Shown here: one piece after another, positions 20,547-61,485 of the stretch
Layout: every line of letters begins with the position of its first letter
Numbering within the stretch: the stretch's first letter is position 1
Assembly (NCBI RefSeq): GCF_037042905.1
Contig: NC_087262.1
Span: forward strand, 13,950,001-14,014,000
Length of the DNA stretch: 64,000 bases
Source: Lytechinus pictus
Lineage: Eukaryota
Reading direction: 5' to 3'
Position numbers and translations under genes: made by a program
The notes under the pieces: generated by a model
Databases searched by the model: none
What the model saw: the letters and a program-made list of their open reading frames with translations, nothing else
Told to the model about the DNA's origin: nothing

Positions 20547-20839
20547 TCAGGTTAATAATCCACATGTAATGCCGGCGACCAATTTCAGCAGGGCGACTAG
20601 AATAATCTCTACCAAACCCGGGGTCGATGCTGCCTTCAGGAACTGCCGAAGCGTATCAAGCTGTGCCTTGCTCAGTTGTACCGGCTCCTTCGCCAGCTGA
20701 CCTCCTATCAGAACAAGCGATGCACACTGATATGTTGTAGGCTGTGTGTACAGGAAGGACGCCATCTTGGTAGAAAGTTTGTCCGAAGTGAGGTCATCTT
20801 CTGAAAAGTCGTGGGCGATGACGCCGACTTTGCTCTTAC
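20547..20839 (-). CDS. Array gene copy 1, coding exon 3 (GKSKVGVIAHDF...AGITCGLLT*); spliced product 197 aa with hydrophobic C-terminal tail
   Basis: ttttcatttacag|GT acceptor completes the Gly codon. 21+280+293=594 nt, in frame to TGA. Confidence 0.85.
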
Positions 20840-22814
20840 CTGTAAATGAAAACAAAATATAGAGATATTCTTATCAATCACTAGCAAATCGTCAATTTTC
20901 CTTCTGTTTTCTTCCTCTATACCCTACCTCAAGGCCAAACACTCTGGGTCAAATGAAGAGAATGAAAGGTCAAGTCCAATTTCTACCAAGAAGCCATTCA
21001 AACTGGCCCTTGCTGACAAGGTTCGACAGGCAGGCAGGGACCACCGGGCCTTGATGTCACGACCCAACACCAAGTTGAATTGTCAATCGAACATGATGCA
21101 TGGTGAGTTGGAGATAAATATTTGCAGGTACATAGGTGATCTTCCTTTCAGAGTATTATGGAAAAATAGCTGAACACCTATTAAGGGCGAAGTAAAACAA
21201 TTTGAGATCAATTTAACCCCAAATCGACTTAAAGGTGACATATCTTGTCCCAGTTAAATTTAAAAAATATATAGACTCACACCTCTCTTTCCGATATTCT
21301 TTAAAAACAAAACATGGGGGGACACCCACTGCCCCCTGTAACGCCGATAATGACGTAATTTGGTAATCACATGCAGTGGTTACCTCATAAACCGGATATT
21401 GGACCATGCAGACAGAACAAGAATTTTAGTTTCAACGCCATTAAATATTCTGACAAAGGAAACATACACTGTACCAAAGAATTAACTGAAATCAAATTTG
21501 TTACTTGTCCTTGTCCTTTCATATTTTATTGCAAAGTTATTTTGGACATTTCTCATGGTAAGCAGGACTAACAATATGAGCATAGTGACTGACTTGGCAA
21601 CTAGTGTAGCCCTGTACTCCGTAATACTCTTTTTATAGCTAAAATAATTGCAGCTCACTGTAGTTTCTGTGTAATTTATCTTCAATATTTGTTATGAAAT
21701 ATCATTGAATTGTCTTTGTTATTTTGAATATGTGATGTTTCTTCGATTGTATTTTTTTGTTGAACGGAAATGAATAAAATCTAAATCTAAATGTATGACA
21801 TTATGCAAGTACGTCGAGGTGCACACGTTTACATCCCCCACGTCCGCTGTAAGAAGTAGGTCGGGGTCGAGCTGAAAGGGGCATGCATGTGGTGACCCAA
21901 CATTGTTATTTTCAGTTAATTTAAATTAATGGGAGATGAGGAGGGAAAGAGATTATATATTACTACATCTTATTTTTATGGCTGATTGTCATTCAATCGT
22001 AGTAAAAGTAACATTGCTTCTCAGCCAATAAAAATCCCCGGTGAATTATCATGGTGGGTGAATTGCGTAGTGCCAATGTTGGTTACCATAAAGGCGGTGA
22101 TATAACGGACATTTTTGTTTAAAATGGGGAAAACAAGAAAAAGGGGAGTAAAATAAAATATAACAAAGAAGATTACAAATATAGTGCCCCGAGTTGTGAC
22201 AATCTGTATTACCCCTGTTAATAGATTTAGAAGAAGTCGTTTTCATCACAACAAAACAATAGTGAACCATACAGTTATTTACCTCCGGTGTTAAATTTGT
22301 GATATAACATCAATGGTGTTATCACAACACCCTTTATATTTGCTTCAAATCTCTTCGGTGTTATGATCAAAATCTAGGATTTCAACACAATAAAGGGTGT
22401 GGTCCTCTAGGGACGGCAACTAAGTGTCAATTGTACACCCAAGTGTTTAGGTTGATTCCCACTTTAAAATATTTTGGCGTCGCCACTGGTTTCCACCATC
22501 CAGTGATATAATGAACCAAAACATTTGAGGTGACGAGATTTGGCGTATCGGGCAAAATTAATTTTTTGAAATTCGAGTGAGCGAAGTGAGCGAGCAAACA
22601 TTTCTTCAAGTTTTCATTACAAAAAGAAAACAATTTTGTCACAGATCTTGAGATAATATTCTGAAAATATTGTCATATTTCACTCTTCTGTATTTCCTTT
22701 TCTTATTATTATTTATTTATTTATTATTATTATTATTTTTTTTTTTTTGGGGGGGGGGGGGCAAGCGCCCCCATCTGTACGCCACTCCAGTATCAATTAG
22801 ATGAAGATACTAAC

Positions 22815-23094
22815 CCAGGTGATTCTTAGCTCTTTTCAAGAAGCCATCGTAGAGAGAATCCGTGACATTGGTGATCGAAAATCGCCTGTTGTCGATGGAA
22901 TGACACAAGATCATAACATCAATCCCATCGAAATCAAACTTGTCAAGGTCACTGACGTTGTAGGGAAGCGACTCGTATCTCACATTCTCAACCAGGTCGC
23001 GCATTTCTCTGTTTATCTGTTGCTTCAGACCTTCAACATTTCGAGGCAGGCTACCACTGCATATGGCAACGCCCACTTTCTTTGTTGCTGGCGC
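22815..23094 (-). CDS. Array gene copy 1, coding exon 2 (APATKKVGVAICS...KRAKNHL-G); uncharacterised alpha/beta (TIR/SEFIR-like?) protein
   Basis: ORF 22810-23112 is paralogous to four other exons. Pyrimidine tract + aag acceptor; G|gttagt donor, phase 1. Confidence 0.85.
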
Positions 23095-23383
23095 CTTGTA
23101 AATCGAAGTCACATCGTGAAATGAAAAAAGGATAAAAAAAATTATATTAAAATTATAAATTCAAATATAGAAGAGGTAACAATAACAAAAATATATATCT
23201 CCCCGGCTTTCTTCTTCTTCTTCTTTTCCCTTCCCCTTTCTTTCTTTTTTCTTTTTTCTTTCTTTTTTTTTCTCTCTTTTTCTCTCTCTTTTCTTTTGTA
23301 CTGTTGCGCTTCGCGTCTTACCTCTTAGCGCGTTGTTTTTTACGCTTTGCGTTTTGCGCACTGCGTTTCTTGGTGCTGTTGAC

Positions 23384-25122: not shown

Positions 25123-25160
<38 letters not shown>

Positions 25161-25512: not shown

Positions 25513-25533
25513 CTTTACACTAGAAGAATCCAT
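25513..25533 (-). CDS. Array gene copy 1, coding exon 1 (MDSSSVK)
   Basis: ATG GAT TCT TCT AGT GTA AAG|gtagac. Upstream flank (25560-25640) is homologous to the flank of exon 1 in copies 2/3. Phase 0 joins exon 2 in frame. Confidence 0.7.
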
Positions 25534-30365: not shown

Positions 30366-30615
30366 CACTCTAAAATAATTGGGTAAAAACGCTTCGTGAG
30401 GGTAATTATGTGTCCAACCAACATTAGGCATTTCTTTGGGGCATTTTTATTTATCCAGTGTGATGAAAATTTTGCCCATTCTAAAGTAATTGCTGCTTAA
30501 TTTTTAACCTTACCAGACAATATGCTTCCCGCACTGGGTAAAATACGGCCCCAAATTGGTTGGACACATAATTACCCTCGTGCTGGTTAAAATTTTACCT
30601 AATATTTTTACAGTG
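30366..30615. mobile_element. CAC...GTG-ended MITE, mostly TA-flanked (related types at 37976-38259, 58719-58927, 60288-60984)
   Basis: ta-cactctaaaa ... ttttacagtg-ta with long internal inverted repeats. Confidence 0.75.
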
Positions 30616-32499
30616 TATATGTATTTTACTATACCTTTACGTATGTAAAGGTAGTGATATGATGTTAAAGTTCAGATAGAACGTAAGTCTATAAGGATAC
30701 AGTCAACATTGAATGGGATGAGATGCATCCAAACAATATTATTATTTCAGGGGTTATCATGTACCAACCCAGTCGCGTCAGCACACCCTAACACACACAC
30801 ACACCCACGCACTCACACACGTCCATCTCCAGCACACCCATACATTGTAATACAATTGTAAAGATGTTTAATAGTGTGTTGTTGTGGTTACTTAAGTAAT
30901 ATGCATGCCCCTAGCCTACTCTTCGTCTTCCATTCCTATACCAAGAACAAAAAGAACGATTAGGGAAAATATTTGTGTTAATCTACTGTCACCAAACTTT
31001 AGAATACTCTTTCAAAAGTATTACGCAATAAACTGACATTTCAGAGGTTAAAAAGAGCAGATAAAATGAATATTTTTTTTCAAAAATACATCACTCCTAA
31101 TATTCTTAGTATGAGGGCGCTCTCGTTCTCCCATATATAGGGGGTAGAAGTGTACAGATGCATTTTGTGGATTATATGCAGCGAAATTGAGGGGTGATCG
31201 TCTTTACTTAACCAAAAATAGACCGATCTTTACTTTAAGAGTAATATTTGGAGAAAAAAAATAAAATCCATAAAAGCAAGTTGAGTTACGGGCATTTTTT
31301 TTTATTTAATTCATTTTGATTCATTTGTATTCTGCATAACAATATAACACGATTTCATAAATATAACAAAGACATTTTAACAATAAATCAGGTGTATTAT
31401 TATATATCATTAAACATAAAATCACTTGTGGAATATGGATTGTCATTGTAAGCAAAAATGCTTGAAAATATGACAATTTGTTGATTCATAGCGTCGAAAG
31501 CCTCGGAGAGGTCCAGAAAATACCAACAATAAGAAATGCTTTGATACAAATTTAAAGGTAACTGGTATTTTGTACATTATGTGATTGACTTAGATCGATT
31601 GAAGTCAAGACTTTATTCCAGACACTGCTGGATAAGCAGAGGTCCATATAAACAAACAGTATAGTATACATCAAGACAGACATACAGAGATAAAACTAGA
31701 TTTAACAAAGAACAGATGATTATGTACTGATAGTAAAACACGGTATAAATTACTCTTTACAATATTAAATATAAAATGATCACACTAAAAAGATACTAGG
31801 AATAAAAGTTGACTACACAAAACAAAATGACAGGAATGTATGAAAAGTATAATGGAAATATTTACAAATGGCATAATGAGGTAACTTGTATCAACAAAAG
31901 ACAAACATATGTAACTTTTTTTTAGTAGATTGCGACTCATGACTCTGCCATTAAATAATACTAATACTTCCACAATTTTGATTTATATCTCGTACCATGG
32001 ACCCATTACGAATATGCTCGTACTGAGGGATCAAATTCATCACCTGAAGCAGTTAATAAGCCCTTATCCTTCCGCCAGTCAAAATATAGTTCCAAAGTTG
32101 GTGATATTTCTTCCCAATTTGGGAAAGGAAGTTCAGTAATTACCAAAAATAGAATCAGTGTTAGATGGACAATAATATTCACACACTTTGTCAATCAGCC
32201 ATATATAAATAATTAAAAAAAATTGTCAATGGGTTGGCTCAAATCATGGACCTATCCATGCTCAAATGAATATCTGTTGCCTTCCCGATGTTAATAGGCC
32301 CGTGCGACATCCAAAGTGTCATCTGTCAGTCTTCGCTACAGCCACATATGATATTGATTCAGTATCCACCATGCGAATATGCTCATCGTGCAAAAAAATG
32401 GAAACACATGAAAGAAGGGGAAGAGTTGTACATTTAATTGAAAGTTGGCGTGGATACCATATTTTGAATGATTTTAGAAGGTGGTAGACAAGAAGTATT

Positions 32500-32650
32500 G
32501 TGGTATTGTAGAAGTTTATTCCATAGGAATAGCCCAGCATACTGAAAAGACCGACCCCATGAGTTATGAGATTGTGTTCGAGCGAGTAAAGATGATCTGG
32601 CAGACTTAAGGTTCAAATAGGGATTGTATGGATTTATCAAGCTACACTTA
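32500..32650 (-). mobile_element. L2/CR1 LINE ORF2 C-terminal remnant in the 3' flank of copy 2
   Basis: Translation LKSARSSLL...WGRSFQYAGLFLWNKL resembles the G.RSF..A.P.LWN.LP motif. Confidence 0.55.
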
Positions 32651-32710
32651 ATTGTATTGAGGGTCAGTTCTGTTTGAGAGAACTCTTAATGATTGTTTTC
32701 ACAATGTGCT

Positions 32711-33066
32711 TTAATTTAACATATTCTCATATCTACGTCTTTTACAACAACAGAAAATGGAATATATACATCGTTCACAACAATCACATTGAATACAGCA
32801 GCAACAATTACTAAGTCTATTAAATGTAACGCCTACTCTTTCTGTCCAACTCATTTCCGCGCAGAGAAATCTCCCAAGTTCTTGATGTTGCTCGTGGCTC
32901 AGTTGTATTGGTTCATGCGACAGCTGACCTCCAATCAGAACAAGCGATGCACACTGGAATGTTGTAGGCTGGGTGTGGCGAAAGTTAGACATTACAAAAT
33001 GAAGTTTGTCCGGTGAAAGGTCCTTTTCGAGAAAGTCATGGACGATGACTCCCACTTTACTTTTTC
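32711..33066 (-). CDS. Array gene copy 2, coding exon 3; spliced product 232 aa with Cys-rich tail
   Basis: cttatgcag|GA acceptor. 21+322+356=699 nt, in frame to TAA. Tail CCCCIQCDCCERCIYSIFCCCKRRRYENMLN. Confidence 0.85.
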
Positions 33067-34360
33067 CTGCATAAGATGAATATTTATTATGATTATCTAA
33101 ACTGTTTAAGGTGCCCCAAAACAGAAGATAAATACAGTCGGTGAATGAGCTCCTAAAAGCTTTAGGGAATGAAGCCCTTGAATAGTTGATTGTCAGCGTT
33201 TTGGTGAAAATCTCTTTCTAAGTTTTGTTTCTTTTCCTTTATCAAACCAAGTATTACACGTCGAAACATTGACAATATTGGCCGTCCATCAAAGGGTCAA
33301 TTTTTCTCCCACATGGTATATTTGCTTCCAAAATATCAACAAGTGGAATATCCCTGGTAGTTTCGCCTGCATGGCACGATTCAATTGAGGACCAGAGGGC
33401 GTATCATGGAAGGTCTCGTCGGACATTTCATCTGACAGGTCCCGTTTCATCCGATCGTTATCATGGTTACAGTTCTTCTCAGCCAATTTAAAATCAAGGA
33501 AAGTTTTTAGATCTGACAATATATGTCGGACGATAAAATTAATGTTGATTAAACGCTTTGCAGATAGAAGCGTGCCCCGAGGGTCCACAATAACCATGGA
33601 CCCTACTACGAAGGGTCCATGCATTAAATTATTTACGTTTCGCGTTTTGGAATCAGAATCCCATCGCAATCCAAAGAGCAAAGGAGTCACCCCCCCCCCC
33701 CAGTATACAACCTCCTCTTTGCCCAACCCCTCCCCCCTTCCCCGGCGATAATAAGCCCAGTACAATCTATTTCTGCAAGTGGTCCCCCTTAAAATGAAAA
33801 CCGGATAGATGCCTTTGTCCTTGTTCAGACGCAGGCTGTTTTTTTCGGAGTTAGGTCGGAAGAAGGGACAAAAGAAATTGCGCAGTGCCCGTCTGGACAG
33901 AAGTCGTGGAAAGTTCCTTTACGACCTTCCTCCGACCGTGATACTCCAGATTTTTCCAGGAGTATCTCGCTATATCACGACTATAGCTGATGCGCGTAGA
34001 AGCTTAACTAGGAGTATCTGTGACCTCACGCCCTCGCGTTAAACTACCGGGTCAAATTGCCAACAGTTGATAACTTACAGCTCTATCTACTATTAGATTT
34101 CCCGCGGAACAATCGTATAAGGTCGTAGTACACGTACACCATGTACACTGCTACTACTTCCTGAAGTTACTCTGACCCTCCGTAATGGCCCCTGCAAAGG
34201 TCGTTGTAAACAAGCCAGAGTTTCTCTCGTGATCGGACTCGTAGACTATGGGTCGTAATAAGATAAATATCTTTGGAATTTTAATTGCTGCGTAATAAAA
34301 GTTTACTCCCACTTTATCGGAACCCACGTCTGAACATGACTTCTAAACAAAATTACGTAC

Positions 34361-34682
34361 CCAATTGCTTCATGGCTCTGTGAAGGAATCTATCATAAAG
34401 TGCACCTCCGACATCAGTTATTGAGAAACTTCTGTTTTCTATGGAGTGGCAGAGAAGAAGGACATCGACCCTCCTCAAGTCAAACTTGTCCATTTCATTG
34501 ATATTGTACGGCAGTGGTTCGAAGTTCACATTTTCAACGACATCCGTCATATTTTGTTCGATGTAATGAATAAGACCAGATACTTTTGAGTTTGCTTGCG
34601 AAAAGCCATGACAACATACGGTGACCTTCATCTTCCTTTTTACAGAGACAATGCAAATTGAATCAGATTTCTCTCGGGAGAA
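34361..34682 (-). CDS. Array gene copy 2, coding exon 2 (FSREKSD...RAMKQL-G)
   Basis: ttctatttcag| acceptor, G|gtacgt donor. Family motifs LPYN and CHSIENRSFSITDV..LYD. Confidence 0.85.
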
Positions 34683-35420
34683 CTGAAATAGAATAAGAGG
34701 TAATAACAGCAAGGGCGATCCATCAGATTAGGCGCCAAATAATTTTCTGGGGTGGCTTTATTTGAACCTCCTCTCTTGATCTAACATGACTACATCAGAT
34801 TCCTATTTGATGCCAAAAAGTGAAATAAATACTGATGTTTTATTATTACTATATAGGCATATATAATTTGATTATGAAGAATGAATTTAATTGGAATGGA
34901 ATTTAATTTACAACTTCAATGTTCTTGGCACGCAATCACTGCCTAGGCCGATGTTATTCTACTTAAAGCATGAGGAAGGAAATAAGCAAAACGTAATATC
35001 CGGTAAAATAGCAAAAATTGTTTTCATTATTACATATTACAATAGCATGAGAGTTTCCTCATCGTATCTCATGGTGCTGTTTTTGAAATGAATTTTGGTC
35101 TGGAAGAAACCATTTCTTTTAATTTAAGCGCATTAAAAACACATTTTTCGCTAATATGCCACTTGGGCGGGGTTTCTTTTCAAATTCGACAAGTTTAGTA
35201 ATTAACGCATGCTATCTTAGTTGATCGTAACTTATGAAAAAGCAATCAAAACTCATGTCTGGTTTTGCTATTGATTGAATATTGCTAGCTTAATAAAAGG
35301 AAGTGAAAGCTTTACCATTAGCGTTCTGTGTGCAATTTACATTTTTTTAAATTCTGATTATAAAAACAGAGCAAGGGATAATAATCAAACAGAGTAATGA
35401 GGATATAGAATTAGACCTAC

Positions 35421-35441
35421 TTGTACGGAAGTAGAAGCCAT
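35421..35441 (-). CDS. Array gene copy 2, coding exon 1 (MASTSVQ)
   Basis: ATG GCT TCT ACT TCC GTA CAA|gtaggt; identical in copy 3; in frame with exon 2. Confidence 0.7.
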
Positions 35442-36175
35442 GTCTCCTGCATCCTTTTGACAACAAAATGATCTCCTCAGAATGGAAAGGCTGAGCTTAT
35501 CAAGTCTTCAAATTAGATCTGGATCACATGATCGCAGATGATAATACACAAACCAAATGAAAAGCCAACATGTACACATGACTTATCATTTCGACTGCGT
35601 CCGTCATACGTCCAGGACTCGGGTCAAAGCCGAGAGTGAAGGAAGGAATCAGCTTGCGCGGCGGAAGGGTTGATGACTATATTAAATTCAAGGAAATATA
35701 TATGGAAGCAACAACAGAATTTGCATTTAAAAACTGAAAATGTATAAAACTTACTCGCATGATAAGTTAAAGAAAAAAAGAGGAAAATTTCTGGGCAACC
35801 CAAGGGATGCGGACATTTTTTCTTGGTCATTCGACGGGGCGGCGCAAGAGGGAGATAGGGGCGCGCGAACGGCTATATGATTTTCAAGTAGTATAAAAGA
35901 GGGAAGCGAAAAAATGTTCGTTATTATAAAAAAAATATTGTGTGAATTATTAGTCAATACTCGGATTTCAAAAATGATTTATTTTCTTTACTTTTTAAAA
36001 GTAACATGAATAAGCCTATTTGTAATGTTATACTGGACATAAACAGGATGAATTCTCTCTTCAAATTGGCCTACTCGCCCGAAAAGGCTGGCTTTTGGTG
36101 TTGCAACATCACGCTTTTTTAAATGTGTATCCAACAATTTTATTTTATTTCTTCAAACAAATCCTTCCTGTAGGA

Positions 36176-36563
36176 GCACTAGCGTACCTACGGGGTGGGG
36201 GGGAAGAGGGGGCAGTCTGCCCCCCCCCCCCTGACGAGCCACAACCCATGCAAAGGACGTATCCCTGCCCCCCCCCCCTGACGAGCTTGAAAGACCTTTT
36301 TTACCCACCCTGACGAGCTCGAAGACCTTTATTGCCCCCCTGACGAGCTTGGATTTTTTTTTTTTTTTTTTTTTGCTTGTCAAATTTTTTTCTGGTACGA
36401 AATCCTTCATTTGTGATTAAAGACCTTTTTTTTTTGCTTGTCAAATTTTTTCTGGTACGAAATCTTTCATTTGTGATTGAGGACCTTTTTTTTTTTTTTT
36501 GCTTGTCAAATTTTTTGGCGGACGGTTTTGCCCCCCCTGTGAAAAATCGTAGGAACGCCATTG
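36176..36563. mobile_element. MITE family with internal cccctgacgagc and cttgtcaaatttttt repeats (also 55664-55993; partial at 47541-47736)
   Basis: Termini cactagcgtacctacgg / cctaggtacgccactg; absent at the corresponding site in unit B (~47300). Confidence 0.8.
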
Positions 36564-45480: not shown

Positions 45481-45802
45481 CCAAATGTTTCATGGCTCTG
45501 TGAAGGAATCTATCATAAAGTGCACCTCCGACATCAGTTATTGAGAAACTTCTGTTTTCTATGGAGTGGCAGAGAAGAAGGACATCGAGCCTCCTCAAGT
45601 CAAACTTGTCCATTTCATTGATATTGTACGGCAGTGGTTCGAAGTTCACATTTTCAACGACATCCGTCATATTTTGTTCGATGTAATTAATAAGACCAGA
45701 TACTTTTGAGTTTGCTTGCGAAAAGCCATGACAACATACGGTGACCTTCACCTTCCTTTTTACAGAGACAATGCGAATTGAATCAGATTTCTCTCGGGAG
45801 AA
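45481..45802 (-). CDS. Array gene copy 3, coding exon 2
   Basis: 322 nt, 6 substitutions relative to copy 2 exon 2; splice sites intact. Confidence 0.8.
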
Positions 45803-46543
45803 CTGAAATAGAATAAGAGGTAAGCAGCAAGGGCGATCCATCAAATTAGCCGCCAAATAATTTTCTGGGGTGGCTTTATTTGAACCTCTCGATCTCTTGA
45901 TCTAACATGACTACATCAGATTCCTATTTGATGCCAAAAAGTGAAATAAATACTGATGTTTTATTATTACTATATAGGCATATATGATTTAATTATGACG
46001 AATGAATCTAATTGGAATGGAATTTAATTAACAACTTCAACGTTCTTCGCACGCAATCCCTGCCTAGGCCGATGTTATTCTGCTTGAAGCATGAGGAAGG
46101 AAATTAGCAAAACGTAATATCCGGTAAAATAGCAAAAATTGTTTTCATTATTACATTATACAATAGCATGAGAGTTTCCTCATAGTATCTCATGGTGCTG
46201 TTTTTAAAATGAATTCTGGTCTGGAAGAAACCATTTCTTTTAATTCAAGCGCATTAAAAACCCATTTTTCGCTAATATGCCACTTGGGCGGGGTTTCTTT
46301 TCAAATTAGCCAAGTTTAGTAATTAACGCATGCTATCTTAGTTGATTGTAATTTATGAAAAAGCAATCAAAACTCATGTCTGGTTTTGCTATTGATTGAA
46401 TATTGCTAGCTTAATAAAAGGAAATGAAAGCTTTACCCATTAGCGTTCTTTGTGCAATTTACAATTTTTTATAATTCTGATTCTAAAAACAGAGCAAGGG
46501 AAAATAATCAAACAGAGTAATGAGGATATAGAATTAGACCTAC

Positions 46544-46564
46544 TTGTACGGAAGTAGAAGCCAT
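46544..46564 (-). CDS. Array gene copy 3, coding exon 1 (MASTSVQ)
   Basis: Same micro-exon and gtaggt donor as copy 2. Confidence 0.65.
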
Positions 46565-49500
46565 GTTTCCTGCATCCTTTTGACAACAAAATGATCTCCT
46601 CAGAATGGAAAGGCTGAGCTTATCAAGTCTTCAAATTAGATCTGGATCACATGATCGCAGATGATAATACTCAAACCAAATGAAAAGCCAACATGTACAC
46701 ATGATTTATCATTTCGACTGCGTCCGTCGAACGTCCAGGACTCGGGTCAAAGGCCGAGAGTGAAGGAAGGAATCAGCTTGCGCGGCGGAAGGGTTGATGA
46801 CTATATTAAATTCAAGGAAATATATATGGAAGCAACAACAGAATTTGCATATCAAAACTGAAAATGTATAAAACTTACTCGCATGATAAGTTAAAGAAAA
46901 AAAGAGGAAAATTTCTGGGCAACCCAAGGGATGCGGGCATTTTTTCTTGGTCATTCGACGGGGCGGCGCAAGAGGGAGATAGGGGCGCGCGAACGCCTAT
47001 ATGATTTTTCAAGTAGTATAAAAAAGGGAAGGGAAAAAATGTTCATTATTATAAAAAAAATATTGTGTGAATTATTAGTCAATACTCGGATTTCAAAAAT
47101 GATTTATTTTCTTTACTTTTTAAAAGTAACATGAATAAGCCTATTTGTAATGTTATACTGGACATAAACAGGATGAATTCTCTCTTCAAATCGGCCTACT
47201 CGCCCGAAAAGGCTGGATTTTGGTGTTGCAACATCACCCTTTTTGAAATGTGTATCCAACAATTTTATTTTATTTCTTCAAACAAATCCTTCCTGTAGGA
47301 CAGTAGGAGTATACACAATTATACACAAGTATAAAAATATGTAATAAAAATGTGCCAGGATATGCATTGGAAAAAAAATTGTTTTATGATATCGAGAAAA
47401 GGATGGTGTAGCGAAGGAATATTGTCTGTGTGTACCACATAAACAGAAAAGGTATTAAGGGAAACTGATATTATTATAGGTGTATACTTTGAATTTTTCA
47501 TAAGAATAGTAAGAATTTTCTTACAATGTTTTATGTGATTGCCTGAAGACCTTTTTTGCCCCCCTGACGAGCTTGAAGACCTTTATTGCCCCCCTGACGA
47601 GCTTGAAGCTCTTTTTTTTTTTTCCTTGTCAAATCCTTCATTTGTGATTGAAGACCTTTTTTTTTTTTGCTTGTCAAATTTTTTGGCGGACGGTTTTGCC
47701 CCCCCCCCCCCTGTGAAAAATCCTAGGTACGCCACTGACTACAGTTTGAGAGTAGATCGGACTCTACAATGAATCGACACCAGAAAAGAAATCGCCAATT
47801 CCTCCATTGCCAACTCGTGCACTCACCACATGGTCTACCTACATTTAGTCTAAGGCCATTCCGTCCATCAACATTTCGTCTAACAACCATTTGGCCTATG
47901 GTTAAATCATCACTTCGTCTTATCCCCAGTCCGTCCATGACCATTTCGTCTCATAACCAGTTGGTCTAATATTGGTTTTATTTTCATTCATTTCGGCCAA
48001 ATTTACACTTAGTCTAATAAAAACCATACACACCTTTTTTGTTTTCCGTACCTTTCATACCCTTTCCGCGCCTTTTATTGGGGGATTGCACATTTCGAAA
48101 TATTAACTCCACCTACTATGTGACATCTTTCATTATGGATTCACCCTTACCAAATGGGGCAACAATGTCGCAGACGGCGAAACTAACCCAAGACCGATCA
48201 AAACTATTACTTTGCAAAGGCATCGGTCGGTTTCGTTGGTGGAACTAAAGCATTTTGCCACAGTAACATCGGCGAAAATTGACTCCACATCGATCAAATC
48301 TATTACGATATTTCCAATGTCATATCATCGGTCGGTTTGGAGTCAGTTTCATTTGTGTAACTGCGAAATATTGAACGGGATGCTATACTACTTTAGAGAG
48401 TAGTGTATCTTTGTACAACTAATTCTTGAAGGTACATGAGTGTAATTCTAAGGGTGCATCTGTGACCCTCTCTAACACGTTTAAATTTCAATTTTAGTGA
48501 AATGTTTATTTTCTCCCGATTGACATTACGCAAGTTAGATCCCAATTCATATAAAATGAACAAATCAACAGTAATGTAACAATGTATGTAATTTATTTAC
48601 ATGGAAGGAGGCGTAAAAATAGCACCATGTGCTTGTGTCGGGATACGCCTGTAAGAGTACAACTAAACAACAAATACCAAAAGAAAGGGCTACGAGAAGG
48701 GAAATAAATAGAAGAGATGAAAAGAAAAGTGCAAACATAAAGTACAGTTTTTAAAGAACAGCATAAAATTGCACCAAACATCTTTAGATTTACCAAAACT
48801 ATTGCATGATTATATTATATTATAAATATTATTAAATGGAATATTCCCTGCATTTATTGCAGCCTTTGTTATCTGGTTTACTGATTTCTTTTTTTTTTTT
48901 TGGGGGGGGGCAAGCGCCCTTCCAAGCCCCCCCCCCCCCCCCCCATTCGTACGCCACTGGTAGGAAGGGAAATTTCAAAGTTCGTCCTAGCACTCCTCTT
49001 TTGCAGCCCCTACTAGAAGACCTATAATTGTCATCATTTTATTTAGTCTAGCATTCCTAAAGAATTGAACAACATCCCCCTCCCTTCATCAAAGTACACT
49101 ACAGACATGACAGATCAATCTAAGAAATCTCTGAAAACTTACCTCTTTCTTTCTATCTACTTCGTACATGCATTTAAATGGTCATTATGTAGTCTGATGT
49201 GTTTGTAAACACTGTGACATAGTTTTACTATGGAAAGCGTACTAAATGCTGGTTATTATTATTATCATTATTATTAGTGCTATTATTATCATCAGCATCA
49301 TCATTATCGTCTTTAGATATGAACACATTACTACAACTATCTACATGTACACGTATAGAGCCACTTTTGCTTTCTATAAGGTCATATTTCATTCGATTGA
49401 GACGGAGTATGATCAGCTTTGGGGGTCTTTCGCCAAACATGAAGTTGATGAACGGGATGAACCCTTCTTCGATTTGATCTAATTAATGCCCGTTTCAGAT

Positions 49501-49779
49501 TTACCAAATTATAACATAGCACGATGAAGTCAAATATGTCATGAGAAACGGGCATAGTAGCATGACTATCGGAAACTTAATACATGTATATTAAAAATGG
49601 CCTAATTGATTTGAGTATAAACGTAAAATGAAGGAGCTTGCCGAAAAAAAGGCAAAGTTTGTCTAAACTGACGAAAAAAAAAGTACTAAATAAAATGAAA
49701 TGAGTTGAAAAGAATGTTTTTTCGGCGATATCTCGGTTTCTATCTCTCCCTATAAAAATTATATATCTTTTTTTAATTC

Positions 49780-50069
49780 TCAGTTCAGATATCCACATGT
49801 AATAAAGCACACAAGTCTGTAAAGCATCACTTGAATTCTTTCCGACCAAATCTGAGGTGTTGCCGAGCAGAACTGTCGCAGATCAGAGCGCTGTTCATTG
49901 GTCAATTCGACTAGATCATGTGACAGCTGACCTCCAATCAGAACAAGCGATGCACACTGGAACGTTGTAGGCTGGGTGTGGCGAAAAGTAGACATTTTAG
50001 AAGGAATATTGTCCTCTGAAAGGTGATTTTCTGAAAAGTCATGGACGATGACTCCTACCTTACCTTTTC
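49780..50069 (-). CDS. Array gene copy 4, coding exon 3 (GKGKVGVIVHDF...LVCFITCGYLN*); spliced product 204 aa
   Basis: cttttgtgcag|GA acceptor. 18+307+290=615 nt, in frame to TGA. Confidence 0.85.
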
Positions 50070-53068: not shown

Positions 53069-53375
53069 CAAAATATTTCTTAGCCCTTGGCAGGAATCTA
53101 TCATACAACGCATCTGTGACGTCAGTTATTGAGAATCGTCTGTTGTCTATGGAGTGGCAGAGTAGAAGGACATCGATTCCTCTCAAATCGAACTTGTCAA
53201 TGTCGCTGATGTTGTACGGGAGGGATCTAAATTCCACCTTTTCCACAACATCGGGTAACTTTTGTTGGATGTACTGGATAAGGCCCGATACATCTTCCAT
53301 CAAACTAGAACTGCATACAGTAACCTTCACTCTCCTTGTTGGTGGAACAAGACTAGTTGTTTCACCCTTCATTTT
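53069..53375 (-). CDS. Array gene copy 4, coding exon 2 (KMKGETTS...RAKKYF-G)
   Basis: tttcacaatag| acceptor, G|gtatgg donor; family motifs present. Confidence 0.85.
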
Positions 53376-55309: not shown

Positions 55310-55327
55310 CTGTCTTCTTGAAGCCAT
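55310..55327 (-). CDS. Array gene copy 4, coding exon 1 (MASRRQ)
   Basis: accATGG Kozak-like context, CAG|gtgagt consensus donor; same peptide in copy 5. Confidence 0.75.
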
Positions 55328-58300
55328 GGTTTGTGGGGTTAAGTGTGTGAAATTGATATTACCGGAGTTGCTATTATGTACATGCCGGATCACCTCGGGT
55401 GACATGGGATTGCCAGACTTTGTGCCTACTTAGCTGGTAATAATCTTTGTAATGTAAATAAATATCATGTTATCATTAGGTTTTTTCCTTGGATTTTATG
55501 GCACTTTATATTGTTGACACAATGTACTTACTAATATAGTAATAAACAAGTAACAAAGTATGGGCTACAGCAAAGGAGCACATTATGCATGTTATGGATA
55601 TTTCAATGTTAAAAATTGACAGATGACTTTGATTAATTTGTTTTACAAAGCAGTAGCATAATGGGCACTAGCGTACCTACGGGGGGGGGGGGCAGTCTGC
55701 CCCCTGACGAGTCACAACCCATGCAAGGGACGTATCCCTGCCCCCCCCCCTCCCCCCTGACATGAACCTGAAGACCTTCTTTTTTTTTTTTTTTTGCTTG
55801 TCAATTTTTTTTCTGGTACGAAATCCTATATTTGTGGTTGAAGACTTTTTTTTTTTGCTTGTAAATTTTTTTCTGGTACAAAATCCTATATTTGTGGTTA
55901 AAGACCCTTTTTTTTTTTTTTTTGCTTGTCAAATGTTTGGGCGGACGAATTTGCCCCCCCCCCCCCCTGTGGAAAATCCTAGGTACGCCACTGATAATGG
56001 GCCAAACATTTTGAGATGCACACTGTGACAGACGGGCCTTAATTTCTAATTTCATTTCTTTACTTTTATATCATTGTAATTCATTTTTTATCGATTGATT
56101 GCTCCATTAATTGATTTTTGGGGGGAGGGGTACAGCGCCCCAAACCCCCTTCCCGATGTATACGCCAATGCGATATAAGATTAAACGTTATGCTCAGTGC
56201 CATAGGTTGTGTACATGTATTATTGTCAATGTATACCATAAGCTAACTTTTCACACGCACTCTCACACCCACACAAACACACGAATTGTATTATGGAGGC
56301 AGATAACGTTATTCCTAGATAAAGATAAATAAGTAAAAACAACAACAAAAGTTAACTCTTTAAGTTGAACTGCAATTCCACACTTTTGGAGCTATAATAT
56401 CTTACCAAATATATTTAACAGAAAAGGTAATATTTTACCCTGTCATTGAGATAGGTCATCTCCCTTCCGGGGGATATTTTGAAATCTGATTTGCATTCTT
56501 TGTGTGTATCAAGAATAGCTGCAACTGTTGATGTCTTTGATTGGATAATATCTCGACAAGAACATCATTACAAAACGTAACCATGTTTGGTACGTATACT
56601 CCTTGAACTTAATATTTTTTATCTGAAGTTGTTTGATCTGTTTAACAAGGATGAAAGGATATCTAAATGTAGACAAAAATATTATATATATGCGCATGGT
56701 TTAAGTCTCCCTTTTGAATAGTGTTTTACCCCCAATGTTGTATACAGTCATTCATGTTCCGGTTGAATCTCACATTTGGAATCATCATCAGTATTTATTC
56801 TACAAATAATATAATAATATTGGCTGGACAACTTCAGTTATTATAAATATCAAAGAAAATGGGATATATAGAGACAAGAAGGCCGAAGGGAGGATGGGTA
56901 AACAAGAAGTATACAAAATGACTTGAATGACAGAGTATTTGTAACAAAGAAAAGCATTTTGGCGTGAATTACTTTCGATATACACTAAGAGTTTAAGTTT
57001 GCAGTCTTAATACAACACTGGAACACATTCTCGGTGCGATTTTACACCCAAAGTGGAAATAAGGTGCACCTTATAAGGTGCAATCTTTTGCATTCAAAAT
57101 TTCCAGAAAGAATGCACTACCTTTAAGGTGTATAATGTAGCTTATTGCACCCTTTAAGAAGTTTCTTAGAGGTGTGTAGGGTGCATATAATTGCACACTT
57201 TTCTTAGTGTGATAGCCTTCCAGACTTAACCTGTCAAGAAGTTGACCCGGCTGGCAGGTATCAGACCAAAAAAAAAATCCAAAAACTGGAACAACAACGG
57301 AATGAATAAAAGCTATTGCAACTTTCCCCCAATCTTGAGTTTCTTCTGCAAAATGCACCCTTCAGTGATCCACATTGTTTTTATCTTGACTTGAAAGTTG
57401 GAAAGTGAAACACATCAACCATTTCAGATCATGAAACATTTTATGACATTTGTAGGAAAATAATATCTATATTTAGATTACAAGTTGACAATGACGCATT
57501 CTCTCTGGAGTCTCTTGAGCAAATCTAAAACATATAAATTAAACGTAAATGCCAGTTGTGGTAACGATCTAAAATTGCTGCATATAATCAAATGGAACAA
57601 CCACCAAACTCTTTATCTGTATCGGAACAAAAAATATGTGCCAAATGGTACTAGTAAAAACCAAAATGTGCCATTGCTGAGAAATAGACAAAAGCCAGGA
57701 ATTCCACCCAAATGTCGGGTCTTTTTTTATAAGAAAAGGTGATACACTGCCCCACATGTGCTTATCTATGTTGGTGATCTCTAGTGTGGTCCCTTTTCAG
57801 TTTTAGGTTGCATGATTTTCCCAGAGTTGGATTTATGTATGTTAACCAGATCCAGATCATGTGATGACATTGACCTTGATTTTACATGCTTTTCCATGAA
57901 GTGCTTGCTGTAACTACATTTCTGTATCTCTAAGTTTAACACTTCTTTAAACAATGTTGATTTGGGGGAAAAAAAACAAAATGAATACCCCGTTTGCTTA
58001 AAGACATTGATAAGATATAAAAGTGAGTCATCCGCTTCATCATTTGCAATATTCTTTCAGAGCAATGGTGTTCATATATTGGAACCATCAATGGATGATA
58101 ACATTGTATATTTTGAATGCTTATGAATTGTACTTTTGCATATGAAAGAACTCTGACAATCACTCAACTTTGGATTTTTTTTTAAACGACATTGTTTATT
58201 TGTCAGTTATAAATTATATTGGCATGTACACGAAAATATTGACCAGCAGACAATTCTGGTGGGATTCGTTAACAATGAAGTGAAATTAAAATATCAAGTG

Positions 58301-61004
58301 CAAATTTCAAAAACATGCATACTCTACACAGAATCTAATTTATTGAAATGATTGCATGAAGATAAGAAATCCACTTGCAATGTATTATTTATTCTTTTTG
58401 ACCAGCAGATCTTGCTGAAATGTTTTGTGAAAAAATTCAAATTCAATACTATTACAAAGCTAAATAAAATACACACAAAAGAAAAATACAATACACAGAA
58501 TTATAATGATTGGAATGCATCAAGGTTGGAAAATATAATTGCAATATATAGTTCAGAAAAAAAAGTAATAGAAAAGAGAGAGACGGAGCAAGATAGAGGG
58601 CCAAAAAAATGGAATGTAGAATTTGAACATTGAGAGAGAAGTCAGAGAGCATAAGAAGATGAAAGGGGAAGAAGAGTGTTAATTTGATAACAAGAGCGAA
58701 AACAAACAAAAAACATTACACTCTAAAAAAGATTTACCCAATATTGGGTAAAACGGGAGCATGCATGTTGGTTAGGTGAAAAGATACCCAATATTTATTT
58801 TGTACATTTTACTCAATGTTGCGTTGGAATAGCCCAACATGGGTTTTTTTTTTTAAATACCCAGCAAACATGCGTGTTCCCTTTCTAACCAATATTGGGT
58901 AAAGTTTTACTCAGTGTTTTTAGAGTGTATAAATCCAATTCAAAACTACAAAGCCACATGAATAAATACTGTCATTTTTACACACTTTTTACAAAATTAA
59001 TTGAAATATTGAAGAGAACCGTTGTGATCAGTTTAAGGTTACATGCAAGAAAATAGGGATAACATTCTCAAGAATAGGTGGGTAGATGAGTATAAGCATG
59101 GAGCTATATAGCTCCATGGTATAATGTAGGAAACGACAAAGAGAGAGGGGGGTAGGAGGTTTACGCAACCGCCAATCGATTGGCTATTTTAACAAGACCT
59201 TTTACATGTTTTATGAGCGTACATAATTTCATTTATCAACGATCATCATCATCATAATCATCATCATCATCACGGGTACACAGCAACAGAACGAGAGTAC
59301 TATGTCGCTGTGGTCGGGTGCAGATGCGACATAGAGTAGCCTTAAAAATATCTCGGGCTTGCATTGAGGAAGTGGGTAAGGGTATGATCATTGCAGTCCC
59401 ATATATTATTTTTAGATTATTTATCTTACATAAAATTCTACATTTGAGAATGAATATTACTTAAGTTTCTTAAAATCATATACATGGGATTTCTACCAAA
59501 CTCACTAGGTTGTTGATTTCAGATGGGACTGTGAAGATTAAAATACGACCTTTAGTAGCCTCCACACCCCCTTGCTGTCTCTGTTATATATCCTACACCA
59601 GTTTTCATCTTAATACTACTAATAACAATAATAATGAAATAATGATAATAAAAATAACAATAATGATATTAGTAATAAAGCGTTTATGAGGCGCCGATTA
59701 TCTAGTTGCATATCCAATAGTAATAATAATAAAGATTGATTTATTAAGCGCATAATAGAAAGCTCTATGCACTTTGCAATGTAGGACAGATATTAACATA
59801 TGGGCGGAAATCCCAGAGGGGACGCGTCCCCCTACCATTTGGAAAGGGGGGGACACTATATCAAATGTCCCCACACTATTTTTGGTCTTTTATTATGGAA
59901 AAAAATACATTTAAAGTCGAAATAACACATGTAGGATCCTATCCACGAATTTCGCAATATATCGATAATATACCTTTTTTTCTTCTTTTTTGACTGTCAA
60001 ATATATTTTGGACAAAATGTCCCCCCCCCCCCACTAACCTTTGGGAAGAGATTTCCGCCCATGTCATAGTATGAAACAAAGTAATTGTAAGAATGCGTAA
60101 TAGCTAAAAGATATAAATTACTGATACAGTATGAAAATAAAATCAAGCATAATTAAATCAAAGTAAACAGGAGACATTCTGTCAAATAGCATGTAAATAT
60201 TCATCAATTATTGTAAAATTGAAATAAACTTTCAATGGCGCACTTTATTCCCCCGGATTTAGCTCCGGCTGCTAAAGTTGCTTGGTACACACTAAGAAAT
60301 TCCTGTTCAAATGGGGTGTACGATACGTGCGTACACCTCGCAAAACTGTTGTACACCCCTGTACTATTTGCGTGCACCCTACCAGTCTTGCTGATAGATG
60401 TATATGGTATAGATTAAGTTGATTTGTGATCGAAGATTACCCGAAATAACAATGCACTAACACATTTCACTTTACCTAAGTGGATCATTTTTTTAAATAT
60501 TTAATATTTATGTGATGATGATGATTGTTTCAAAAACACAATTAATTACGTATACATTTGGAGAAACAGTAAATAGAGCTATTATAGTTGAACCACAACT
60601 ATAAGCACAAGTCAAAATAAGAATCGGATCATATCGCTAGACACCTCATCCTCTCTCAGCGCTTCTCGCTGGCATAGCGGGAAGAATCTTGACTACTATC
60701 ATGACTATAGAACAAGGCGAGTTCGAGTCCCAACTAAGGTAACTAAAAAAATCGATAAAGAAAGTGAATGGACCGGAAGTCTCGACAATCTTTTTGTTAT
60801 GTTGGGTGGGGTACATTATGCACCCTGAAGGGTAGACGTGTACACCCTCTAAGGTGCAGATGGACACCCAAAATAGGGGTACACACTGTACACCCCTATT
60901 CGGGGTGTACGTGTGCACCGCTAGGGGTACTCTTATAGGGACAAGCCCTAGTGGTGCAAAATTGAACCCAAATTTCTTAGTGTGTACATTCAAGGAATTA
61001 ATCC

Positions 61005-61150
61005 TGCCGAGTACCAATTCACCTCACATGGGTTGAATGCAGCACGATTAGAGTAAATTTCTTGCTGAAGAAAATCTCGCCATGGTTGGGAATCGCACCA
61101 CGTCCCTCTGATTACAAAGACGAGAGTCGTAAACACTAGATCACGACGCC
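61005..61150 (-). mobile_element. tRNA-derived SINE fragment immediately 3' of the copy 5 stop codon
   Basis: cacctcacatgggttgaatgcagcac...cactagatcacgacgcc is homologous to the 40.3 kb copy. Confidence 0.7.
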
Positions 61151-61174
61151 CCCCGAAACTTTATAATGATTAGG

Positions 61175-61485
61175 CTATAACATATCATCATCGTCATTAT
61201 TCTCATCACCATCATCATCGTGGTTAGACAGGCACCGACATGTTCTGCGGAGCATTGCTTGAAACCTTTCCAAACGACTTGGATGTGATGCCAGGAAAAA
61301 CTGCCGAACATCATCAAGCTGTTTCTCGGTTAGCTCCACTTGATCACGTGACAGCTGACCTCCAGTCAAAACAAGCGATGCACACTTGAATGTCGTAGGC
61401 TGTTTGGAGCGAAAATTAGACATCTTATAATCTTTAAGATAATCTTCTGAAAAGTCATGGGCGATGACTCCTATCTTACATTTTC
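61175..61485 (-). CDS. Array gene copy 5, coding exon 3 (GKCKIGVIAHDF...DDDDML*); spliced product 213 aa with acidic tail
   Basis: tattttgcag|GA acceptor. 18+313+311=642 nt, in frame to TAG. Confidence 0.85.

Follow-up and report, generated by a model that had tools for sequence, protein, structure and literature searches.

The window, a 64,000-nucleotide stretch of the Lytechinus pictus genome, contains five paralogous three-exon genes on the minus strand, whose products have a core of ~155 aa in common and differ in their C-terminal tails. The best explanation overall, to which we assign a probability of about 0.6, is that these tails have diverged in place and act as membrane-association modules of graded strength. 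In RefSeq the genes are LOC129281453, -54, -65, -64 and -63 (copies 1 to 5), each annotated as "uncharacterized". The tandem array comprises six genes, the sixth lying 19 kb beyond the window, and it is part of a large family expanded in echinoids: at least 27 matches to exon 3, that is, at least 27 copies, are present in the L. pictus genome. The family proteins are ~200 aa long and lack a signal peptide. In the core, copies 2 and 3 are 98% identical and the older copies 57–79%; the common core reported in an earlier note on this DNA is real. All five tails stand on the minus strand as that note read them and at the places it gave, though the end of its span (61290) falls within the stretch that encodes the copy 5 tail; its term "exon 3" was apt, since a short exon 1 of 6–7 codons was found upstream in each gene. 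Canonical GT/AG splice sites occur at all copies, and RefSeq models with identical tails exist for copies 1 (P0173), 3 (P0166), 4 (P0176) and 5 (P0001), while the copy 2 tail is matched by an older model, P0172. The tails, which belong to the translated sequence of the terminal exon, are thus confirmed as an observation, and their interpretation as localisation variants is partly supported by the results below.

The copy 1 tail (30 aa, counted from the end of the last core helix; 20550–20639, stop 20549–20547; all gene parts given here are on the minus strand) is identical to that of LOC129281453 and ends in LVEIILVALLKLVAGITCGLLT (20615–20550). This end is, as had been proposed, a hydrophobic helix; it includes E and K and is followed by a Cys five residues from the terminus (..ITCGLLT). 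Exon 3 also encodes the second half of the alpha/beta domain (20640–20839, AG acceptor 20841–20840), exon 2 the first half (LCHSI..FSITNV; 22815–23094, from splice sites and translation), and the coding part of exon 1 (25513–25533) reads MDSSSVK before a GT donor, in agreement with P0173. Copy 4 (LOC129281464) has a 29-aa tail (49783–49869, stop 49782–49780) forming an amphipathic helix with three Cys and a terminal ITCGYLN; its last residues, VMLYRLVCFITCGYLN (49830–49783), are those given previously. Translation and splice sites place the core part of its exon 3 at 49870–50069; exon 2 lies at 53069–53375, P0176 reading MASRRQ-KMKGETT across the junction, and translation locates the exon 1 coding part (MASRRQ) at 55310–55327. 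The 40-aa tail of copy 5 (61178–61297, stop 61177–61175; 100% identical to LOC129281463) consists of a basic amphipathic helix (hydrophobic moment 0.63), CRC, an acidic tract of GAT-like repeats, codons (GAT)3 GGT GAT GAG AAT AAT GAC (GAT)3, and a final ML; both the CRC and the repeat-encoded tract had been recognised before. Its exon 3 core part (61298–61485) and exon 2 (61700–62012) were defined by translation and splice sites and the exon 1 coding part (MASRRQ, 63145–63162) by translation.

In copy 2 the 51-aa tail (32714–32866, stop 32713–32711) is supported by a contig from run X13 and by P0172. An amphipathic helix is followed by a string of 11 Cys within 21 residues, then by KRRR and YENMLN; the reported 11-Cys cluster and KRRR are therefore there, but KRRR is not terminal, standing six residues before the stop. 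The RNA evidence concerns copy 2 and comes from one public run (X13), whose kind is not on record. Its joints 33065|34360 and 34682|35421 have CT..AC ends, that is, GT..AG on the minus strand, and delimit the core part of exon 3 (32867–33066, joint 33065|34360 with the cut at +1), exon 2 (34361–34682, to which the X13 contig 34360–34682 essentially corresponds) and the exon 1 coding part (MASTSVQ, 35421–35441, also from translation). No joint interrupts a further contig (32264–32948), which covers the Cys tail and its stop and continues through the 3′ UTR. The copy 2 tail is thus transcribed, with exons 1, 2 and 3 spliced together, and removal of the tail by splicing out of exon 3, which had been raised as an objection, was not seen for copy 2, and the models that RefSeq gives for the remaining copies do not show it either.

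Copy 3 (LOC129281465, P0166) has the copy 2 tail cut after the fifth Cys (..CCCCIQCD), which gives 28 aa (43929–44012). This tail and the core part of exon 3 (44013–44212) were delimited by comparison with copy 2, exon 2 (45481–45802) by translation and splice sites, and the exon 1 coding part (MASTSVQ, 46544–46564) by translation. Identity to copy 2 extends up to ..ATTCAATGTGATTG, beyond which the sequences are unrelated, and the TGA stop (43928–43926) spans the point where identity ends. The "cut-down" Cys cluster is accordingly genuine, five Cys and a stop, but the alignment marks it as a truncation at a rearrangement breakpoint rather than a designed variant. The duplicated segment carrying copy 2 (32781–39783) pairs with 43927–49515, which carries copy 3; over the gene, identity is mostly 95–100% (two short blocks 87–90%) to about 37977/48436, and further upstream it drops to 81–84%. 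Identity of 95–100% falls within the allelic diversity of sea urchins, and with proteins 98% identical and an N/D difference at 32809 polymorphic among runs, copies 2 and 3 might be two haplotypes of one gene, one with a structural variant, placed in tandem by the assembler. We regard this as unlikely, because the diverged upstream flanks fit an old duplication homogenised by gene conversion, the syntenic cluster of L. variegatus likewise has a c4-type gene followed by two tandem c2-type genes, both with full Cys tails, and in runs from the same organism some contigs follow copy 2 through 32781 while others leave it exactly there.

The tails had been described as interchangeable. Both DNA and protein alignments are collinear, and a swapped-module origin was rejected: the tails share a common origin, and each changed within its own gene instead of being traded between genes. 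A helix with W/L-x-E-R and the ITCG motif are shared in the alignments; copies 1 and 4 align at equal length with 14 of 28 aligned residues identical and ITCG in both, and their TGA stop is matched by A TGA G in copies 2 and 5, there in another frame. As the alignments indicate, the five tails go back to a single ancestor in which an amphipathic helix preceded a near-terminal Cys in the ITCG motif. After gene duplication, copy 1 acquired hydrophobic substitutions; in copies 2 and 5 a frame change led translation past the ancestral TGA into the former 3′ UTR; imperfect TGY repeats grew into the cysteine string with its basic flank (copy 2) and GAY repeats into the acidic tract (copy 5); and copy 3 lost its end by the truncating rearrangement.

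The tails evolve faster than the core, for which dN/dS is 0.14–0.44, dN in the tail being roughly 2–4 times that in the core. When L. pictus is compared with L. variegatus, copy 1 is 87% identical in the tail and 94% in the core, and copy 2 is 74–76% and 79–88% identical, respectively, with the block CCERC-x-YS-x-FCC invariant. Every tail type is retained in L. variegatus, and the order of the genes is preserved there. The elevated tail dN could mean that the tails are fast-drifting, largely unconstrained appendages, their differences being neutral by-products of tandem duplication with no role in targeting. Triplet-repeat slippage and shifts of frame or stop are typical neutral processes, copy 3 is annotated as a gene despite losing most of its tail by rearrangement, and one L. 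variegatus model (P0006) stops before the Cys. Neutral drift of this kind has, in our estimate, a small chance of being correct: it is opposed by the survival of the tail types at 74–87% identity in a syntenic arrangement with an invariant Cys block, by the persistence of ITCG in the Strongylocentrotus purpuratus orthologue P0169 (..FITCGLT), by the Cys kept in 14 of 15 distinct non-TM tails (6–11% Cys overall; the paralogues are related, so these are not independent observations), and by relatives in which clear-cut TM and CaaX anchors take the place of these tails.

Those relatives bear directly on membrane anchoring, which was assessed by simple hydropathy sums and motif reading. At the tail position, L. 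pictus relatives have strong TM helices (−5.6 and −4.5 kcal/mol), clusters of 6–9 Cys or polybasic ends with Cys, and Diadema members end in CCVIV and CCCHIL, CaaX boxes with upstream Cys. A single strongly hydrophobic C-terminal helix without a signal peptide was found in L. pictus L005/P0025, L012, L011 and L016; no obvious anchor was seen in the tails of family members L013–L015, L017, L018 and L020. In frog relatives of the domain, long coiled coils are present and an anchor is missing; attachment to membranes is therefore no inherent property of the domain. Judged from these sequences, family-wide anchoring by the tail is supported. It is in hydrophobicity, number of Cys and charge of the flanks that the tails vary, the very features on which attachment to a membrane depends, and most likely the strength of attachment would differ from copy to copy. 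Copy 1 is a borderline candidate for a transmembrane helix. The proposal of a tail anchor in this copy is weakened: its hydrophobicity approaches that of a TM helix marginally (summed biological-hydrophobicity score −0.4 kcal/mol, with a central Lys), the same segment scores +1.8 in the L. variegatus orthologue and +3.0 in a near-identical L. pictus model with Asp, and the closest relatives tolerate charged residues (E or D) there.

Palmitoylation-only proteins depend on weak intrinsic membrane affinity, and palmitoylated Cys favour basic or hydrophobic surroundings or the neighbourhood of TM or prenyl anchors (PMC3010063). Similarly, the tail helix may confer weak, reversible affinity, and S-acylation of the adjacent Cys by DHHC-type enzymes would then trap the protein there. 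For each paralogue, the holding strength and the choice of membrane would depend on how many Cys can be acylated, on helix hydrophobicity and on flanking charge. The most stable hold is predicted for copy 2, in the manner of cysteine-string protein (CSP), which requires palmitoylation of its string to be targeted to membranes (PMC4447612). The hold of copies 1 and 4 would be intermediate, the former possibly inserting as a weak tail anchor, and that of copy 3 would be weakened. Owing to its acidic end, copy 5 would come off the membrane most readily or be subject to regulation: the 14 mostly acidic C-terminal residues should counteract anchoring by repulsion from acidic membranes. Its former assignment as soluble was a guess, however, as the strongly amphipathic basic helix and two Cys are retained.

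The near-terminal Cys might instead be prenylated, or prenylated before palmitoylation. The Cys of copies 1 and 4 is at position −5 (CGLLT, CGYLN), a CaaaX pattern, P0169 ends in CGLT (CaaX), other L. pictus paralogues end in CML or CMQ (CaX), and shorter CaX and longer CaaaX sequences are reported prenylation substrates (PMC10541624, PMC11121372), in addition to the canonical boxes in Diadema. Nevertheless, we consider prenylation very unlikely: a canonical CaaX box is absent from all five window copies, the Cys of copies 2 and 5 are far from the C-terminus, and non-canonical motifs are inefficient and sequence-dependent, the present sequences not being among those tested. An AlphaFold model of the core (63 sequences, pLDDT 88) contains five beta-alpha units and, directly after the last core helix, an extra tail helix (residues 181–194) of lower confidence (60–75). 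This position would suit a structural or regulatory tail, with the helix packing on the core or oligomerising and the Cys clusters acting as a redox switch or binding a metal. Flavodoxin-like domains often perform redox chemistry, Cys-x-Cys and CC runs occur also in metal-binding proteins, and Zn, Cu or Fe-S, as in metallothionein, would be the candidates; metallothioneins, however, lack aromatic residues. We find such a role improbable, since Cys strings that are interspersed with I, F and Y and lead into KRRR have the composition of palmitoylated strings (PMC3010063), and paralogues with true TM helices or CaaX boxes in place of the tail fit anchoring rather than metal binding.

Known systems offer parallels for membrane association by the tail. 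Paralogues of the Ras/Rho small GTPases (H-, N- and K-Ras), with their hypervariable C-terminal regions, likewise combine a conserved alpha/beta core with variation mainly in the last 20–40 residues, where Cys lipidation sites (here predicted), polybasic runs and some CaaX boxes occur as in this family; combinations of these set membrane affinity and destination (PMC3010063). In contrast to Ras, the family has no P-loop or other G motif, its first strand being followed by C-S-x-S and not GxxxxGK[ST], its five-stranded sheet follows the flavodoxin/CheY pattern, the G domain having six strands, no match to the Ras Pfam family was found, and the window copies lack the canonical box. Copy 2 and its L. 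variegatus orthologues, with 9–11 Cys in about 22 residues, resemble CSP (DNAJC5), the string of which has 12–15 Cys (PMC4447612), and SNAP25, which makes its first membrane contact via a hydrophobic Cys-rich domain (PMC3010063): in copy 2 and its orthologues, hydrophobic residues are interspersed among the Cys, a basic run comes next, and there is no signal peptide. The copy 2 domain is unrelated to those proteins, without a DnaJ or SNARE domain, and the string, whose acylation is predicted, lies at the extreme C-terminus and has evolved recently from a short tail with one or two Cys. L005/P0025, L012, L011 and L016 are similar to tail-anchored proteins, the target organelle of which is decided by helix hydrophobicity and tail charge (PMC5450235), and to GIMAP GTPases, a mixture of anchored and soluble paralogues; however, only copy 1 in the window approaches TM hydrophobicity, marginally, and the family lacks an AIG1/GTPase motif.

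The core is, on the model, a flavodoxin/CheY-like alpha/beta fold of unassigned activity, its five beta-alpha units being common to the three-layer flavodoxin-like, CheY-like and TIR folds. None of the 63 family members matched any Pfam family, and a profile search of PDB sequences gave nothing below E = 0.17. VIA-align Z scores were 9–11 against CheY receivers, small G domains and TIR domains, and TM scores in the ESM Atlas were 0.5–0.65 against flavodoxins; the best PDB matches in Foldseek include RhoA, weakly (TM about 0.4), and GIMAP7 is among the weak matches, so these fold matches do not discriminate between superfamilies. One S. purpuratus member is labelled "Flavodoxin domain-containing" in UniRef. 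The conserved core residues, LCHS, ITDV, HDF and Q, are specific to the family.

The five paralogous genes lie head to tail in the window, all on the minus strand, and a motif scan for the core signature LCHSI found five occurrences. Each gene showed two conserved coding blocks in stop-to-stop frames, joined in all copies by the same splice sites: the donor is G|GT and follows '..LG', and the acceptor is AG and precedes 'G-K-x-K-V/I-G-V'. Since a short exon 1 of 6-7 codons (MDSSSVK, MASTSVQ or MASRRQ, each followed by GT) was found 0.7-2.4 kb upstream of exon 2, the exon bearing the tail is exon 3, and the earlier note had named it correctly. The N-termini are hydrophilic (MDSSSVKAPATKK, MASTSVQFSREKSD, MASRRQ..), and by inspection a signal peptide is absent. 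The translated frames gave five different C-termini: a 22-residue hydrophobic stretch in copy 1; 11 Cys within 21 residues, then KRRR and YENMLN, in copy 2; the copy 2 tail stopping after five Cys in copy 3; ..VMLYRLVCFITCGYLN in copy 4; and, in copy 5, ..RRTCRC and then an acidic run whose codons are imperfect GAT repeats. The same terminal residues were present in current or earlier RefSeq models of copies 1 to 5 (P0173, P0172, P0166, P0176 and P0001, respectively), confirming the tails as they had been described from the sequence. The exon frame of copy 5 was 100% identical to RefSeq LOC129281463, and an exact-protein look-up returned no record for the proteins of copies 1 and 2. A separate 429-aa open frame (window 14625-15914, minus) resembles the C-terminal part of a retroelement polyprotein and is unrelated to the gene family.

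Read contigs were inspected for copy 2, and the tails of copies 1, 3, 4 and 5 rest on gene models. In the public run X13, whose kind is not on record, the joints 33065|34360 and 34682|35421 matched the predicted exon boundaries of copy 2 exactly, and the skipped parts were CT..AC on the plus strand, that is, GT..AG on the minus strand. One 323-nt contig of this run corresponded essentially to exon 2, while a 684-nt contig ran from 32948 to 32264 without any joint, through the Cys string, the stop and approximately 450 nt of 3′ UTR. Transcripts that leave exon 3 by splicing ahead of the tail, which the earlier note had named as evidence against its reading, were not seen for copy 2. Run X13 also covers the introns of copy 2 at lower depth, so it is probably RNA containing pre-mRNA or DNA. 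Runs X1-X3, labelled 'RNA?' by guess, were rejected as expression evidence: they gave patchy coverage, with none over exon 2, and zero splice joints. A minor X13 joint (33065|35420, one contig) leads from exon 1 of copy 2 straight to exon 3; skipping the 322-nt exon 2 puts this form out of frame, and the domain would not be produced from it. The second introns of copies 2 and 3 share a 133-158-aa open frame without Pfam match (33289-33765 and 44436-44837, minus); it probably represents a repeated element and not a gene, since all runs show raised contig depth over part of it. Two segments upstream of copy 2, 36134-36724 and 37119-37512, had contig depths that ranged from hundreds up to tens of thousands in all runs; they represent high-copy interspersed repeats, the 31- and 60-bp tandem units of which recur at 47544-47617 and 55785-55918.

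The membrane-anchor features of the tails were scored by simple hydropathy sums, taking the minimum of the Hessa-scale values added up over 19 residues (kcal/mol), a transmembrane (TM) tail anchor being taken as a single C-terminal segment of about 19 residues or more with a predicted insertion energy of ≤0. The copy 1 tail, which had been put forward as a tail anchor in the earlier note, has a hydrophobic segment that extends to the last residue (in tail-anchored proteins the segment lies within ~30 residues of the C-terminus), but it is a borderline case, with a KD mean (19 aa) of 2.35, a score of −0.4 and a central Lys. Its relatives scored higher, the L. variegatus orthologue +1.8 (KD mean 2.06, Glu in the segment) and P0175, a near-identical L. 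pictus model, +3.0 (KD mean 2.07, Asp in the segment). On a helical wheel the charged and small residues of copy 1 fall on one face, and for this reason the tail is read as a very hydrophobic amphipathic helix with a Cys, which may insert weakly, rather than as a secure tail anchor. By their hydropathy sums copies 2-5 are not TM (scores +8 to +20). The tail of copy 4 is amphipathic (KD mean about 1.0, score +8, moment 0.40) and has three Cys on the helix; that of copy 2 is a cysteine string with a basic flank (KD mean 1.14, score +9.3), in which the Cys are intermixed with I, Y and F before KRRR; that of copy 5 is a basic, strongly amphipathic helix (KD mean −0.51, score about +20, moment 0.63) with two Cys, after which 14 mostly acidic residues follow.

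Published S-acylation sites have basic or hydrophobic neighbours and lie near TM or prenyl anchors, in proteins with weak membrane affinity before palmitoylation (PMC3010063). The features of the family tails fit this description, and Cys-rich ends of the palmitoylation type, with clustered cytosolic Cys next to hydrophobic or basic residues able to lend weak membrane affinity (PMC3010063), were found at the sequence level in copies 2, 4 and 5. The tail features also match the cysteine string of CSP (PMC4447612). A canonical CaaX end (Cys at −4, then two mostly aliphatic residues) occurs in none of the five window copies, their last Cys being at −5 (copies 1 and 4), −11 (copy 2), −2 (copy 3) and −19 (copy 5). 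In tail-anchored proteins the organelle is chosen by hydrophobicity and tail charge (PMC5450235), and by analogy tail differences of this kind could plausibly change the membrane destination.

The tails had been called interchangeable, which did not hold in the sense of exchanged modules. Those of copies 1 and 4 (30 and 29 aa) can be aligned residue for residue, sharing E, I, V, L, K/R, L, V and a terminal I-T-C-G-x-L-x, and the same helix, W/L-x-E-R-hydrophobic, opens all five tails. The S. purpuratus orthologues terminate in ..FITCGLT and ..FFTCNLLVNV. In the DNA alignment the stop TGA of copies 1 and 4 stands opposite 'A TGA G' of copies 2 and 5, which is read there in another frame (..Y-E-N.., ..D-E-N..); hence copies 2 and 5 owe their 'EN..ML(N)' ends to former 3′ UTR that indels further upstream shifted into frame. 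Short TGT/TGC runs make up the Cys string of copy 2, and GAT runs the acidic tract of copy 5, which suggests triplet slippage. We concluded from these alignments that the tail diversity arose by divergence in place, not by exchange.

The cut-down Cys cluster reported for copy 3 is present, but it is better described as a truncation at a rearrangement breakpoint. Copy 3 equals copy 2 up to ..ATTCAATGTGATTG, except for one A/G change (Asn to Asp), is unrelated beyond this junction, and its stop TGA is formed across it. Insertion of a transposon was considered as the cause; however, the remainder of the copy 2 tail with the 3′ UTR (30500-32783) is present only once in the window, so a simple insertion does not account for the loss, and truncation at a breakpoint is the preferred explanation. 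Directly downstream of the breakpoint lie a ~620-bp self-complementary foldback repeat (43209-43830) and then a 77-bp satellite (41486-42958; 19 copies, 91% match), both of which may have been involved in the rearrangement. Within the gene, the duplication that comprises copies 2 and 3 shows mostly 95-100% identity, falling to 87-90% in two short blocks, and further upstream it shows only 81-84%. Two genes of copy 2 type are found at the corresponding position in L. variegatus. An old duplication that gene conversion has kept homogeneous is the more probable reading, an assembly artefact the less probable one. At window 32809 (T/C, plus strand), the site of the Asn/Asp change, C also occurs in contigs that follow the copy 2 structure; consequently, the difference is polymorphic or converted and is not diagnostic of the copy.

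Among the older copies the cores are 57-79% identical, with dN/dS of 0.14-0.44, and the tails 20-46%. Tail dN is roughly 2-4 times core dN, while dS is saturated for most pairs, so no dN/dS value of the tails is reliable. In L. variegatus, 26 of the 30 residues of the copy 1 tail are identical (core 94%), and identity is 74-76% for the copy 2 tail (core 79-88%), in which the basic run and the block C-C-E-R-C-x-Y-S-x-F-C-C are conserved. At the syntenic locus this species has a tail of copy 4 type (..CFITCEYMN) followed by two full Cys-string tails. Every tail type is thus retained in this species, which counts against simple drift.

In the L. pictus genome at least 27 exon-3 matches are clustered on six chromosome-scale contigs, and 20 of these were retrieved and their tails read after the last core helix. 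Clear TM tail anchors stand at this position in the loci L005 (model P0025, −5.6 kcal/mol), L012 (−4.5 kcal/mol), L011 and L016, the last with a Pro/Thr-rich extension after the TM helix, and L019 has a multi-TM extension with several hydrophobic segments; all five loci are on contigs other than that of the window. Cys-cluster tails were found in L003 (6 Cys) and L004 (9 Cys and a basic run), and polybasic ends with Cys at −3 in L006-L009; a few of the 20 tails were without an obvious anchor. CaaX ends occur in relatives from other urchins, namely S. purpuratus P0169 (CGLT) and the Diadema antillarum / D. setosum proteins P0029 (CVIV) and P0030 (CHIL), the latter two with upstream Cys (..CNCCVIV, ..TCCCHIL), an arrangement of CaaX and preceding Cys known from palmitoylated Ras proteins. 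Cys was present in 14 of 15 distinct non-TM tails, an enrichment (binomial p about 1e-4) that is indicative only, paralogues being non-independent. The occurrence of anchors at the same position throughout the family provides the strongest argument for reading the tails as putative membrane anchors. Further members include L002 (G000:C18:14033102-14033395), 19 kb past the window end, a sixth array member with the tail ..RRFFHCLTCLLFE; a near-identical tail is found on another contig (L001, C5).

The best reading, to which we assign a probability of about 0.6, is a membrane-association tail diversified on a constant core, with lipidation and localisation predicted from sequence features. This part of the earlier interpretation is retained, while exchange is replaced by divergence in place, the tail-anchor call for copy 1 is weak and copy 3 is a truncation. 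A broader proposal is tentative and rather doubtful: the core would be an undescribed metazoan signalling or enzymatic domain without a Pfam family, present in echinoids and frogs and in dozens of urchin copies, which would be tethered at the cytosolic face of different membranes by every known class of C-terminal anchor. The anchors proposed in this one family would comprise the TM tail anchor, CaaX, non-canonical CaX/CaaaX, the cysteine string and polybasic plus Cys. In this proposal the tails would be a rapidly evolving address label like the Ras hypervariable region, new anchor types coming from triplet-repeat slippage and stop-codon shifts. As a principle, diversified membrane-association tails on a constant core are well established in Ras hypervariable regions, SNAP25/CSP proteins and GIMAPs; what is new is the family and the clarity with which the DNA shows the mutational routes. 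If the tails act as their sequences suggest, the cluster is a compact natural experiment on a soluble domain gaining, tuning and losing membrane anchors, in which, within 45 kb, one helix-plus-Cys ancestor gave a helix that is nearly TM, a cysteine string and a form with an acidic cap, by routes legible in the DNA (growth of TGY and GAY repeats, read-through of an old stop, a truncating breakpoint). If they are neutral, it is one more lineage-specific 'uncharacterized' gene cluster. Lytechinus pictus is readily handled in the laboratory, so that fusions of GFP to the tails and mutants of the Cys can be produced without difficulty.

The core itself was modelled by AlphaFold from a 63-sequence alignment (mean pLDDT 88, most of residues 23-176 above 92), which replaced an unusable first model from 9 sequences (pLDDT 54). 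It consists of five beta-alpha units and an extra, less confident tail helix at 181-194. Foldseek matched flavodoxins, FMN reductases and Rho GTPases weakly (TM about 0.4), VIA-align placed CheY receivers and G domains at Z 9-11 and TIR structures at Z 8.8-9.0, and the ESM Atlas indicated similarity to flavodoxins at the fold level (TM 0.5-0.65). These searches describe a generic three-layer alpha/beta fold and do not separate flavodoxin, CheY, G domain and TIR. Pfam gave no meaningful match with single exon frames, and among the 63 family members no recurring match at E ≤ 0.1 and none to Ras, Roc, Arf or TIR; a PDB sequence profile search returned nothing below E = 0.17. Ras-superfamily GTPases have the P-loop GxxxxGK[ST], DxxG and NKxD, whereas this family, as read from alignments A1 and A3, has V-C-S-x-S after strand 1 and no G motifs. 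The likeness to Flavodoxin_1 to _5 and FMN_red is likewise at the level of fold, without a profile match in the family, and the TIR domain, also without a profile match, was structurally no better than CheY receivers or G domains. A caspase-like catalytic His/Cys pair (LCHS .. QCAS) was discarded, since members from S. purpuratus and L. variegatus have Ser in place of the Cys. L80, H82, S83, I91, T92, V94, Y99, L103, V117 and D121 are at least 90% conserved in the 63-sequence alignment, and G111 and Q139 are invariant; these residues define the family's own signature. This conserved flavodoxin/CheY-like domain without a Pfam entry merits functional study for its invariant His-Ser, Thr-Asp and His-Asp motifs and its large echinoid copy number.

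A literature search with six LOC identifiers of the family returned no paper. A profile search of 1.84 billion representatives found 205 relatives of the domain, labelled uncharacterised or bearing automatic coiled-coil names; the nameable ones come from echinoids and anurans, and in the anuran proteins a long coiled coil without an anchor follows the domain. The Atlas clusters are chordate, cnidarian and echinoderm, and the closest also point to cnidarians. Pfam analysis of nine long relatives detected the incidental partners kinesin, P2RX7_C and a weak AAA_16. The anuran models (P0083, P0087, P0102, P0105, P0110, P0114 and P0131, together with P0066 of Xenopus laevis and P0063 of Bombina) are coiled coils of 650-1000 aa to which automatic annotation has given names like 'golgin A6-like' or 'CENP-E-like', and in single anuran models the domain is joined to a kinesin motor or a P2RX7 C-terminal domain.
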